Positions 18,704-22,924 of a stretch of 64,000 nucleotides of DNA are shown piece after piece. The translations under genes and the position numbers were made by a program. Every line of letters begins with the position of its first letter. Within the stretch, counting starts at the first letter, position 1. The notes under the pieces were generated by a model, which saw only the letters and a program-made list of their open reading frames with translations, was not told where the DNA came from and did no database searches. Origin of the DNA: Bugula neritina (Eukaryota > Animalia > Bryozoa); NCBI GenBank assembly GCA_964035545.1, contig OZ037767.1, forward strand, positions 3,297,680 to 3,361,679, written 5' to 3'.

Positions 18704-18858
18704 ATATATATATATATATATATATATATATATATATATATATATATATATATATATATATATATATATATATATATATATATATATATATATATATATA
18801 TATATATATATATATATATATATATATATATATATATATATATATATATATATATATA
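18704..18858. repeat. (TA)n microsatellite, left flank of the Penelope-like insertion
   Basis: Pure AT dinucleotide run of ~155 bp. Confidence 0.97.
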
Positions 18859-18911
18859 ATGTAGTGTGTTCAGATTGTTAATGATACATATATATTTTTT
18901 TTATTTAAAAA

Positions 18912-18968
18912 AATCTCACACGACTATATAGTTTCGTACAGTAAACTGCACTCGTCAGGTGTTAGACT
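18912..18968 (-). ncRNA. Type I hammerhead ribozyme (left Penelope-like arm)
   Basis: Exact reverse complement of 22664-22720: ACAC-CTGACGA-GTGCAG(TTTA)CTGTAC-GAAA-CTATATAG-TC-GTGT. Confidence 0.88.
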
Positions 18969-19201
18969 AAAAATAAATAAAATCTATGAAGCATACCGAT
19001 TATTCAAATTTTTACATAGAGAAAACTATCATGCTAAACACAACGTAAAACGAAAAGCAATTAACATAGTAGTGGATTTGGTGTTATCTATTAATTAATT
19101 AAATTGCTCTTTTTCTAAAGGATTAGACTATAAAAGCTAGATGTTTGATGGAAAGGGTAATTTATAATAGGTAGTACTATGGTTGAGAATTGTTAGTATT
19201 G

Positions 19202-21112
19202 TTATGTGATGTTGCCCAGGTAGTGCTTACGTGCATGTCTGCATGTGGATAGAATCTCATTTCTGTTATTAAGGGAAGATTTGCTGGGCTGGTATATTAT
19301 GAAATATTTTTCCCATAGGCAGAGGTTGCACCTTTTAGTGACTTTGTTGTATGAGTTGGTTTTTTTCATAATTTTCCATGTTATGTCAAAATGGGTGTTC
19401 TTGTCTTTTAGTTTCCAGATATATTTGCTCAATTCAGTATGGTTCTTTTTTGTTTTGTTGTTAAAAGTTGATTTGTGGTTATAGAATCTGGTTTTGAATT
19501 CTGTTTCTGATGTTCCCACGTAAGTCTGGGGTTGGCTGCCATCTTTGGTTGTAACTGTAGCTTGGTATATGATGCACTTTGTGAGGCATTTTCCATCTAG
19601 TGGGCACACTGTGCTGTTTCTGCAGTTACATTCTCGAGGAGGTTGGTTTGCTGGGTTAAGTAATCTTTTATTGTGGCTGTTGATTATGTTGTTTAAATTT
19701 CTGCAGCAGCTGTAACTGAGTTTTATGTTGTTTTTGTTGAAAATTTTGTAGAGTTTGTGATCTTTGGGTATTTCTTCCTCCAGGATTTTAAAAAATTGTT
19801 TTCCCAGGTTGCTTGTTACACTTTTGGAGAATGGGGGGGTTATACCATGTGATGTTTCGTCGTCTTTCTCTTTTTGGTCTGCTAGTGGTGTGTGTTGGCT
19901 GGAATGTTAGGTTATGTGTGTATCCACTTTTACTTAGAGCTTCTTGGTGTATTTTTGTTGTTTGACTGAAGACTTCTTCGTTAGATGAGAGATTGGAGAG
20001 CCTGTTGTTTATGGCATGTGGAATGTTTCTTGTGATATGGGGTGGATGGTTGGATTTGGAGTTTACATATAGGATTTCGCTGTTAGGTTTTACATGGGGT
20101 TTGTGTGTTCTTTTGCTAATGTCAAAATTTATATCTAGATAGTTGACGACTTTTTTGTTTACTTCAATGGTGATATTTAGATTATGTTTTTGAAAAATTT
20201 TGCAGATTGATTTTTTAATTCTATCTATATTTTTTGCAGTGTCGTTGATTACTCCTAGGCCGTCATCACGGTATAGACCGAAGGTATTTCCAAACTTCTG
20301 GTTGATTTTATATAGTAAAATATGCCGACCAGAGTGCAACATTCTGCACCGTCATAGCTGCCCATTGTAATGTCAAATAATGAGCCACATTTTTTACTCC
20401 AGGGTTGGCCGGAATGGTATAACAACATTTTTCTGGCATGGAAAATCACGGTGCGGTCTGTGTCTGTTATGGTGGTATGCTCTGCTGCGAAATCAATTGC
20501 AGTGTGGAGTAATTTATTAGTTATTGATGGATAAAAGTCGACAATGTCAAATACAATAAAAGATAAGCATTTGTTGTTATCTAAATTTGTGAACCATTTA
20601 ATTACCTCGGAAGTATTTGTCCAAATATTCAAAGCTAGTTTTGGAGTTATGGCCTTATTTATCCTGTCTAGTAGTCTTTTGCTGATGATGCCTATTTCAG
20701 TTTTGCTTGGGTTTATTAGTCTGCACTTAGGGTTATTCATAAAATTAGGCTTGTGGTCCTTTAGTGTTATGTATGCCTCAGTTGTGTTGGTGGTCGTGAT
20801 TCTGTCTTCGATTTGTAGAGATTTGGCAATATGTTTAGCTTCTAGGTTTATTTCTTGGGGCGTGTTTTGATCAATTTTTTTGTAATCCTTAGTGATGTTG
20901 TTGTGCAATAGTTCTCTGTAGTTGGTAATTTCCATGTTGTAAAAATTATTTGTTTTGTCAGCAGGTATAATAATAAGACTATTGGTGCCAATTTTTTGGG
21001 CTAGGTCTTGTTTTATTGTTTTCTGGAATTGGCAGTGTACTCTTCTAAATTTGATGTTTTTAATCATGGATCTAATTTTTATTTCGAACCTGGCAAGCTC
21101 TTTATCCATCAA
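19202..21112 (-). pseudogene. Penelope-like RT/GIY-YIG ORF, left copy (5'-truncated, two frameshifts)
   Basis: ORF pieces 20255-21112, 19788-20342, 19202-19609; frameshifts at a T-run after GAECCTLVGIF and at a G7 run near 19833 (C6 in the right copy). Confidence 0.88.
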
Positions 21113-22433
21113 TAACTAATAAATTACTCCACACTGCAATTGATTTCGCAGCAGAGCATACCACCATAACAGACACAGACCGCACCGTGATTTTCCATGC
21201 CAGAAAAATGTTGTTATACCATTCCGGCCAACCCTGGAGTAAAAAATGTGGCTCATTATTTGACATTACAATGGGCAGCTATGACGGTGCAGAATGTTGC
21301 ACTCTGGTCGGCATATTTTACTATATAAAATCAACCAGAAGTTTGGAAATACCTTCGGTCTATACCGTGATGACGGCCTAGGAGTAATCAACGACACTGC
21401 AAAAAATATAGATAGAATTAAAAAATCAATCTGCAAAATTTTTCAAAAACATAATCTAAATATCACCATTGAAGTAAACAAAAAAGTCGTCAACTATCTA
21501 GATATAAATTTTGACATTAGCAAAAGAACACACAAACCCCATGTAAAACCTAACAGCGAAATCCTATATGTAAACTCCAAATCCAACCATCCACCCCATA
21601 TCACAAGAAACATTCCACATGCCATAAACAACAGGCTCTCCAATCTCTCATCTAACGAAGAAGTCTTCAGTCAAACAACAAAAATACACCAAGAAGCTCT
21701 AAGTAAAAGTGGATACACACATAACCTAACATTCCAGCCAACACACACCACTAGCAGACCAAAAAGAGAAAGACGACGAAACATCACATGGTATAACCCC
21801 CCATTCTCCAAAAGTGTAACAAGCAACCTGGGAAAACAATTTTTTAAAATCCTGGAGGAAGAAATACCCAAAGATCACAAACTCTACAAAATTTTCAACA
21901 AAAACAACATAAAACTCAGTTACAGCTGCTGCAGAAATTTAAACAACATAATCAACAGCCACAATAAAAGATTACTTAACCCAGCAAACCAACCTCCTCG
22001 AGAATGTAACTGCAGAAACAGCACAGTGTGCCCACTAGATGGAAAATGCCTCACAAAGTGCATCATATACCAAGCTACAGTTACAACCAAAGATGGCAGC
22101 CAACCCCAGACTTACGTGGGAACATCAGAAACAGAATTCAAAACCAGATTCTATAACCACAAATCAACTTTTAACAACAAAACAAAAAAGAACCATACTG
22201 AATTGAGCAAATATATCTGGAAACTAAAAGACAAGAACACCCATTTTGACATAACATGGAAAATTATGAAAAAAACCAACTCATACAACAAAGTCACTAA
22301 AAGGTGCAACCTCTGCCTATGGGAAAAATATTTCATAATATACCAGCCCAGCAAATCTTCCCTTAATAACAGAAATGAGATTCTATCCACATGCAGACAT
22401 GCACGTAAGCACTACCTGGGCAACATCACATAA
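21101..22433 (+). pseudogene. Penelope-like RT/GIY-YIG ORF, right copy (starts inside RT, one frameshift)
   Basis: Begins at FYPSITNKLL; same T-run frameshift near 21318; open from LLYKINQKF through YRDD, thumb and GIY-YIG to stop at 22433. Confidence 0.88.
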
Positions 22434-22663
22434 CAATACTAACAATTCTCAACCATAGTACTACCTATTATAAATTACCCTTTCCATCAAACATCTAGCT
22501 TTTATAGTCTAATCCTTTAGAAAAAGAGCAATTTAATTAATTAATAGATAACACCAAATCCACTACTATGTTTGCTTTTCGTTTTACGTTGTGTTTAGCA
22601 TGATAGTTTTCTCTATGTAAAAATTTGAATAATCGGTATGCTTCATAGATTTTATTTATTTTT

Positions 22664-22720
22664 AGTCTAACACCTGACGAGTGCAGTTTACTGTACGAAA
22701 CTATATAGTCGTGTGAGATT
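22664..22720 (+). ncRNA. Type I hammerhead ribozyme (right Penelope-like arm)
   Basis: Core CUGACGA 22674-22680, stem II GUGCAG/CUGUAC, GAAA 22697-22700, short palindromic stem III, GUC cleavage triplet ending 22710, stem I ACAC/GUGU extended by AGUCU/AGAUU. Confidence 0.9.
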
Positions 22721-22850
22721 TTTTTTAATAAAAAAATATATATGTATCATTAACAATCTGAACACACTACATTATATTAGCTCTGTCACCCGTGATATCG
22801 AGCACTTTACTTCGCTGGAACTCCAACTAGATTGACAATCAGCATACATT

Positions 22851-22924
22851 ATATATATATATATATATATATATATATATATATATATATATATATATAT
22901 ATATATATATATATATATATATAT
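22851..22924. repeat. (AT)n microsatellite, right flank of the Penelope-like insertion
   Basis: Pure AT run of ~74 bp. Confidence 0.97.

Follow-up and report, generated by a model that had tools for sequence, protein, structure and literature searches.

Apparently coordinated use of two start sites in head-to-head twin insertions of a Hydra-clade Penelope-like element in Bugula neritina

How do two copies of one retrotransposon come to lie head to head, with their 3' ends pointing outward into (TA)n microsatellite sequence on either side? The question is raised by a stretch of 64,000 nt from the 216-Mb genome of the bryozoan Bugula neritina (contig C3:3297680-3361679, in the following 'the window'), and a sequence-only reading had taken the arrangement for a Hydra-type Penelope-like element (PLE) whose two cDNAs were primed from both ends of a cut target and joined centrally. 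Of the explanations weighed here this one fits the anatomy best. We consider it quite probable that the locus goes back to one retrotransposition event, in which a Hydra-clade PLE with a predicted reverse transcriptase (RT) and a putative C-terminal GIY-YIG nuclease inserted into (TA)n with both ends primed. Across the genome, the twin insertions of this family almost always combine two different 3' start sites, one in each arm, and it is this regularity, more than the single locus, that bears on the mechanism.

Positions within the element refer to a single copy of 2,573 bp in locus L005 that served as coordinate reference. From 5' to 3', this unit comprises a short 5' untranslated region (UTR), a frame of 708 amino acids, a 3' UTR containing a hammerhead core, start site 1 of reverse transcription (..CACTACATT), a stretch of 77 nt that starts with ATAT, and start site 2 (..GCATACATT). 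Each start site has an AC-rich motif in front of it, TTRACAATC...CATACATT, which is the same in both cases. In L005 the final 123 nt of another unit stand ahead of this one, and the template was therefore a read-through transcript of tandem units, with the 77 nt lying between the 3' end of one unit and the 5' UTR of the next.

The inverted arms in the window (18854-20535 and 21101-22777) were recovered by the repeat finder as three gapless blocks of 99-100% identity, and together with the alignment and Tandem Repeats Finder this bore out the description of an inverted pair with (TA)n on both outer sides. The arms had been said to differ by a few indels only. A gapped alignment confirmed three of them, with 1 nt at 19839, 3 nt at 19061-19063 and 1 nt at 18902, but added a substitution (18906/22726) beside the last of these, so that the arms differ at four places in approximately 1,673 nt. 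Two of the three indels are changes in homopolymer length, in a C7/C6 run and a T/A run. The supposed spacer of 565 bp between the arms (20536-21100) is in fact the additional 5' part of a longer left copy: it corresponds to element positions 262-826, and the minus-strand reading frame runs through it. At the junction of the two copies (21101-21103) neither (TA)n nor filler sequence was found.

The outer ends are not equivalent. While the 3' end of the left copy abuts (AT)n directly, the right copy is separated from (TA)n by 77 element-derived bases, and this one-sided tail, the most informative feature of the locus, had been missed in an otherwise correct description of the (TA)n flanks. Both outer ends are canonical start sites placed against (TA)n, site 1 in the left arm and site 2 in the right arm, as would be expected if two cDNAs had been target-primed separately. 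The coordinates of all parts are collected in Table 1.

Table 1. Components of the twin insertion, in window coordinates
Feature	Position	Strand	Basis or remark
Left target microsatellite remnant, (AT)n of ~77 units	18704-18857		Tandem Repeats Finder: (AT)77.5 at 18704-18858
Longer 5'-truncated copy	18858-21103	-	Reference positions 262-2496 of the 2,573-bp unit; ends at start site 1 (..CACTACATT); tail-less
Left-copy 3' UTR, predicted catalytic core of a hammerhead ribozyme (CTGAnGA, stem II, GAAA)	18932-18958	-	Core descriptor
Head-to-head junction, TTT common to the 5' ends of both copies	21101-21103		3-nt overlap of the two alignments
Shorter 5'-truncated copy	21101-22773	+	Reference positions 827-2496
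Predicted hammerhead core of the right copy	22674-22700	+	Core descriptor and fold
77-nt 'tail', right arm only	22774-22850	+	Reference positions 2497-2573; read-through sequence that separates start site 1 from start site 2 (..GCATACATT)
Right target microsatellite remnant, (TA)n of ~37 units	22851-22924		Tandem Repeats Finder: (TA)37.5 at 22850-22924

Both copies are dead fragments that have lost their N-terminus and carry frameshifts. The frame of the right copy is broken once, by a 1-nt deletion near 21318, and that of the left copy twice, by the same deletion and by a private extra C at 19839. For comparison we sampled 45 genomic loci of the family, which has hundreds of candidate copies in the genome. 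The two arms differ from one another at four places and from the nearest other sampled copy at 16, and three variants that they have in common occur in no other sampled copy. An exact-pattern search found the shared frame-breaking deletion in these two arms only, genome-wide, and the unbroken version in six other copies. The flanks of the twin insertion are each single-copy, unlike each other, and lie inside a contig of 32 Mb; an empty-site haplotig containing both of them was sought in the assembly, and none was found.

In the mechanism that we favor, the nuclease would cleave the microsatellite on both strands, and from each 3'-OH a cDNA of its own would be primed on element RNA. The two incomplete cDNAs would then be joined by microhomology, either through end joining or through a template switch.

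The twin in the window is far from singular. Among the sampled loci there are approximately 27 pairs in which two 5'-truncated copies stand head to head and direct their 3' ends outward, and 25 of these combine an arm ending at site 1 with an arm ending at site 2. (TA)n borders 20 or more of the pairs on both outer sides. The inner junctions of the sampled pairs are mostly overlaps of 1-4 nt. Partner arms were mostly each other's nearest relatives, the exceptions being three of the 13 distinct pairs tested. In single copies the 3' end always lies against (TA)n, and the 5' end usually does. A genome-wide census was then based on exact patterns in which either start site is followed by (TA)n. 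Adjacent minus and plus ends within 6 kb were counted as a pair, and pairs beyond the sample were analyzed by coordinates only. It yielded 149 canonical 3' ends abutting (TA)n, 67 at site 1 and 82 at site 2, against 0-1 matches for reversed-pattern controls. Collecting and scoring copies in this way, as the earlier reading had proposed, showed that the outward twin arrangement recurs: 42 head-to-head pairs were found, 40 of them combining site 1 with site 2, two combining site 2 with site 2, and none combining site 1 with site 1. Under independent choice mixed pairs would be expected in approximately 50% of cases (binomial P ~1e-10). The rule of one site of each kind holds even in twins that measure less than 100 bp across. 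Both sites also occur among the unpaired ends of the census, site 1 in 27 of them and site 2 in 38.

From the near-constant combination of the two sites we infer that the two primings are coordinated. A dimeric, two-headed ribonucleoprotein could provide the coupling, if it sat on neighboring start motifs of a single RNA and each of its subunits used one of the cut strands. Of the conceivable routes to one-of-each pairs we prefer this as the most likely one, with modest confidence; that the rule does reflect a dimeric particle in which each subunit primes from one strand is a tentative proposal, and we would rate it as possible but rather doubtful.

Several points weigh against this picture of a single, doubly primed event with coupled starts. 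The published PLE enzyme uses its start sites equally on both strands in vitro (PMC11167929). The arm that begins at site 2 normally extends far past site 1; if both arms were made on the same RNA, the first cDNA would have to be displaced. The frameshift that is private to the two arms has no source copy in the assembly and could equally have spread by gene conversion between the arms after insertion; a source copy that was unsampled or lost is possible, as is such conversion. Finally, that there was a single event, and that the (TA)n tract was originally continuous, is concluded from one assembly.

The ambiguity of the shared frameshift also touches the age of the insertion, which had been described as very young. 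The near identity of the arms stands, but it could be maintained by arm-to-arm gene conversion. As the private frameshift may derive either from the source copy or from such conversion, the estimate draws on arm identity and nothing else. The locus is not a special event, with at least 42 head-to-head pairs of the family in the genome and an arrangement that is a published hallmark of PLEs (PMC8557442, PMC3846280).

The self-complementarity of (TA)n had been invoked to explain why both ends of the cut target can prime. This idea is compatible with the data, and AUAU does follow site 1 in the RNA. It is unneeded, however: PLE clades with other targets commonly have inverted partners too, and the enzyme studied in vitro, from another PLE, needs no target homology and extends both strands on a target other than (TA)n (PMC11167929).

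Among the alternatives, the one that survives best accepts priming at both ends and dispenses with the coupling. Two RNAs would be primed independently, and the one-of-each pattern would arise later, for example when a nuclease trims one of the tails during resolution. The tail has indeed been attributed to nuclease-mediated resolution of an intermediate (PMC8557442), the ATAT at its start could anneal to (TA)n and so permit trimming, and the lack of a strand difference in start-site use in vitro mentioned above is in line with uncoupled starts. Such trimming would however have to remove the tail from one side, and from that side alone, in 40 of the 42 pairs, and in no pair from both. In unpaired insertions the presence and absence of the tail are similar in frequency (38 to 27). 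We consider this route unlikely.

A second alternative is self-priming, in which a cDNA snaps back and copies itself into a head-to-head repeat. This is the model put forward for the Penelope elements of rotifers, where self-priming was inferred from palindromes at inverted junctions (PMC3846280). In the present family short fold-backs are found at the junction in a few loci (e.g. C1:15893640 and C3:18485833), and the arms in the window share private variants, as a copy of a copy would. A snapped-back arm should nevertheless be contained in its template, and here the tail is on the short arm while the unique 565 bp (262-826) are on the long one, so that neither is contained in the other. The second arm moreover ends exactly at a canonical start site and does not run into flanking DNA, and the junction is a microhomology of 3 nt without a palindrome. 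Arm geometry therefore excludes a snap-back for this locus. The sampled pairs argue in the same direction. Under a snap-back the arm with the tail should always be the longer, yet the arm without it exceeds its partner in length in 9-10 of approximately 26 pairs, compared to 16 in which the arm with the tail does so. Overall we regard self-priming as very unlikely.

Two independent insertions in opposite orientation into the same microsatellite would be favored by the preference of the family for (TA)n, and close neighbors do occur, such as the two adjacent pairs at C8:4910191-4913071. In the window, however, no (TA)n is left between the arms, which are joined by 3 nt of microhomology and share a frameshift that occurs nowhere else in the genome, and 40 one-of-each combinations among 42 pairs are not expected from independent events. 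It is highly improbable that the twin arose in this way. An artefact of assembly or reading, i.e. a fold-back chimera, or an inverted duplication at the DNA level after a single insertion must be considered as well, as palindromes are a known source of misassembly (PMC8557442) and two of the three indels between the arms, being changes in homopolymer length, resemble sequencing errors. Against this stand the unequal arms, each with a different canonical start site at its outer end, the flanks with their different single-copy sequences inside a 32-Mb contig, and the recurrence of the architecture at at least 42 loci, each with a junction of its own, and we deem such an origin highly improbable. 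Twin priming of the L1 type is excluded by the 1,673 nt present in both arms.

Judged by its sequence, the element is a Hydra-clade PLE, with all testable features of that clade present as listed by Craig et al. 2021 (PMC8557442). Pfam-A gave no RT or GIY-YIG match in the open reading frame (ORF) fragments, the full ORF or 24 relatives, and a profile search of PDB sequences with the element protein found no match. A word-based protein search retrieved 2,712 relatives of approximately 700 amino acids and approximately 50% identity, most of them on contigs of approximately 2.5 kb; the nearest named relatives, proteins of a bivalve and of a bryozoan, are approximately 50% identical. An AlphaFold2 model built with 24 sequences (pLDDT 84.9) had its best matches among telomerase RTs (Foldseek E 2e-7; VIA-align Z 17.6 and 16.9), a fold that is expected of a PLE. 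With the motifs YRDDG and FDIVDFYPSI visible in the full-length ORF, this predicts a reverse transcriptase of the PLE/telomerase-like kind.

The presence of a C-terminal GIY-YIG endonuclease is suggested through a homolog of 49% identity, P0001, that matches PF01541 above the curated cut-off, and whose stretch 504-529 aligns to ORF residues ~596-621 (IYQATV...YVGTSE). Residues Y588, Y603, G605, R614, H618, E673 and N687 are invariant among the 24 relatives. No Cys or His residue lies between IYQATV and YVGTSE, i.e. the CCHH motif is absent from the GIY-YIG core. The CxCx5C linker reads CNCRNSTVC (C567, C569, C575), CNLC (C667, C670) is located ahead of E673, and CRH (C696-H698) follows N687-N690. 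With GIY-YIG, CxCx5C and CxxC all in place, the identification as a Hydra-type PLE in (TA)n made from the window stands. In the full-length L005 ORF the RWK motif is found as KRMRWKAF, and DKT replaces DKG in IIPADKT; R46, W47, A123, D124 and K125 are invariant and T126 nearly so among the 24 relatives. The left copy in the window retains PADKT, while its RWK-bearing N-terminus has been truncated away. The remaining Hydra features are a unit below 3 kb (2,573 bp), a single ORF of 708 amino acids, insertion into (TA)n and a hammerhead motif, which is a predicted ribozyme core: CUGAnGA, a stem II of 6 bp and GAAA are present in both copies when searched with the descriptor of PMC8557442, and stems I and II fold. 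Rfam, applied to the region as well as to the full-length copy, reported no hammerhead family, its models falling short of E 1, and the motif was picked up by the simple core descriptor only.

The loose hammerhead core descriptor gave five matches in the window where 1.4 are expected. Two belong to the element, and the three others, at 17855-17872(-), 24416-24436(+) and 42333-42358(+), are probably due to chance. Note that P0001, a 'hypothetical protein' of 1086 amino acids from Solemya velum, aligns to the PLE ORF in two BLASTP segments. It is a head-to-tail fusion of a truncated and a nearly complete ORF of a related PLE, a partial tandem that was mis-annotated as a gene.

Some loci of the family show additional arrangements. 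The L005 copy (1110-3809 of G000:C3:12878375-12882474) is also preceded by an inverted arm, and its frame of 708 amino acids is uninterrupted, from which the family may still be active. At G000:C5:13769824-13769901 (L009 tile) and C2:24697198-24697276 (L041 tile) one arm consists of the 77-nt tail alone and stops exactly at site 1; these tail-only arms look as if the second reverse transcription had been blocked where the first one began. In G000:C9:2728160-2738250 (L010-L013, L054, L057-L059) a twin with arms 2150-2500 and 747-2573 is present three times head to tail, with a period of approximately 2.58 kb, beside a mirror-image pair, and seems to have been amplified at the DNA level as a tandem array. 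On C8 the same rearranged insertion, a minus-strand piece 412-755 joined to a plus-strand piece 1792-2573, is found three times at intervals of ~200-280 kb (L068-L070; G000:C8:263920-265062, 457233-458369 and 740199-741338), and these repeats were probably carried by a larger segmental duplication.

The locus in the window is thus a real, ordinary and dead twin insertion of a described retrotransposon clade, to which it adds a new family member. By itself it matters little, and its value lies in being a clean example from a young and abundant family with at least 149 intact 3' ends. The twin arrangement, the one-sided tail and priming on two strands were known before; what is new is the quantified one-of-each rule for start sites, by which this family turns the literature's tail that is 'often at one end' into a sharp regularity. 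The rule speaks against pure self-priming and for coupled priming of both target strands. As the integration mechanism of PLEs is largely obscure, the family is a good substrate for biochemical tests. If a dimeric ribonucleoprotein is indeed responsible, the pairs would constitute, for PLEs, the first evidence from a genome that the priming of the two strands is coordinated, and they would supply a concrete, mutable substrate design for integration work in vitro. On the practical side, Pfam-A is blind to the RT of this element, and routine annotation will miss Hydra-clade elements despite 2,712 public relatives.

Compared to known systems, the distinction from L1 made in the sequence-only reading proved right, with overlapping arms and 1,673 nt duplicated. 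Twin priming in L1 reportedly uses one RNA once and produces an inversion that lacks kilobase-scale duplication. The two systems share the priming of reverse transcription by the second target strand, which leads to an inverted segment, but here both arms contain the 1,673 nt, and each of them departs from a 3' start site.

With the Hydra clade the element shares a unit of less than 3 kb, a single ORF, RWK, DKT in place of DKG and the CxCx5C linker, further a GIY-YIG core devoid of CCHH, CxxC and CxH flanking the conserved E and N, a 3'-UTR hammerhead core and insertion into (TA)n (Craig et al. 2021, PMC8557442). Its tail of 77 nt differs from the 30-40 nt usually quoted, and Bryozoa, the phylum of B. 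neritina, are not in the published host list of the clade. The inverted 5'-truncated partner and the one-sided tail are PLE hallmarks (PMC8557442, PMC3846280), and the canonical architecture (Arkhipova 2006; PMC3846280; PMC8557442 Fig. 2) is matched by the head-to-head partner at the 5' end, the tail at one end, heavy 5' truncation and partial tandems elsewhere in the genome, as in L005. In the window, by contrast, both members are truncated, so that there is no core of pseudo-long terminal repeat (pLTR), ORF and pLTR.

A mechanistic parallel is provided by a purified PLE protein that cleaves and extends both target strands. It starts on the RNA at two internal sites that are adjacent to each other, and the tail corresponds to the sequence from one site to the other (Frangieh et al. 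2024, PMC11167929). This element, PAc, a Poseidon from Anolis, belongs to another clade and has in common with the present family the use of both target strands, two adjacent internal start sites in AC-rich context, the inter-site tail and an AT-rich target. Its start sites are devoid of target homology, whereas site 1 is followed by AUAU here, and its choice of site is not strand-specific in vitro, whereas the genomic pairs studied here are nearly always mixed. Published wording on the tail goes no further than 'often' or 'optional'; in this family, one site of each kind is used in 40 of 42 pairs.

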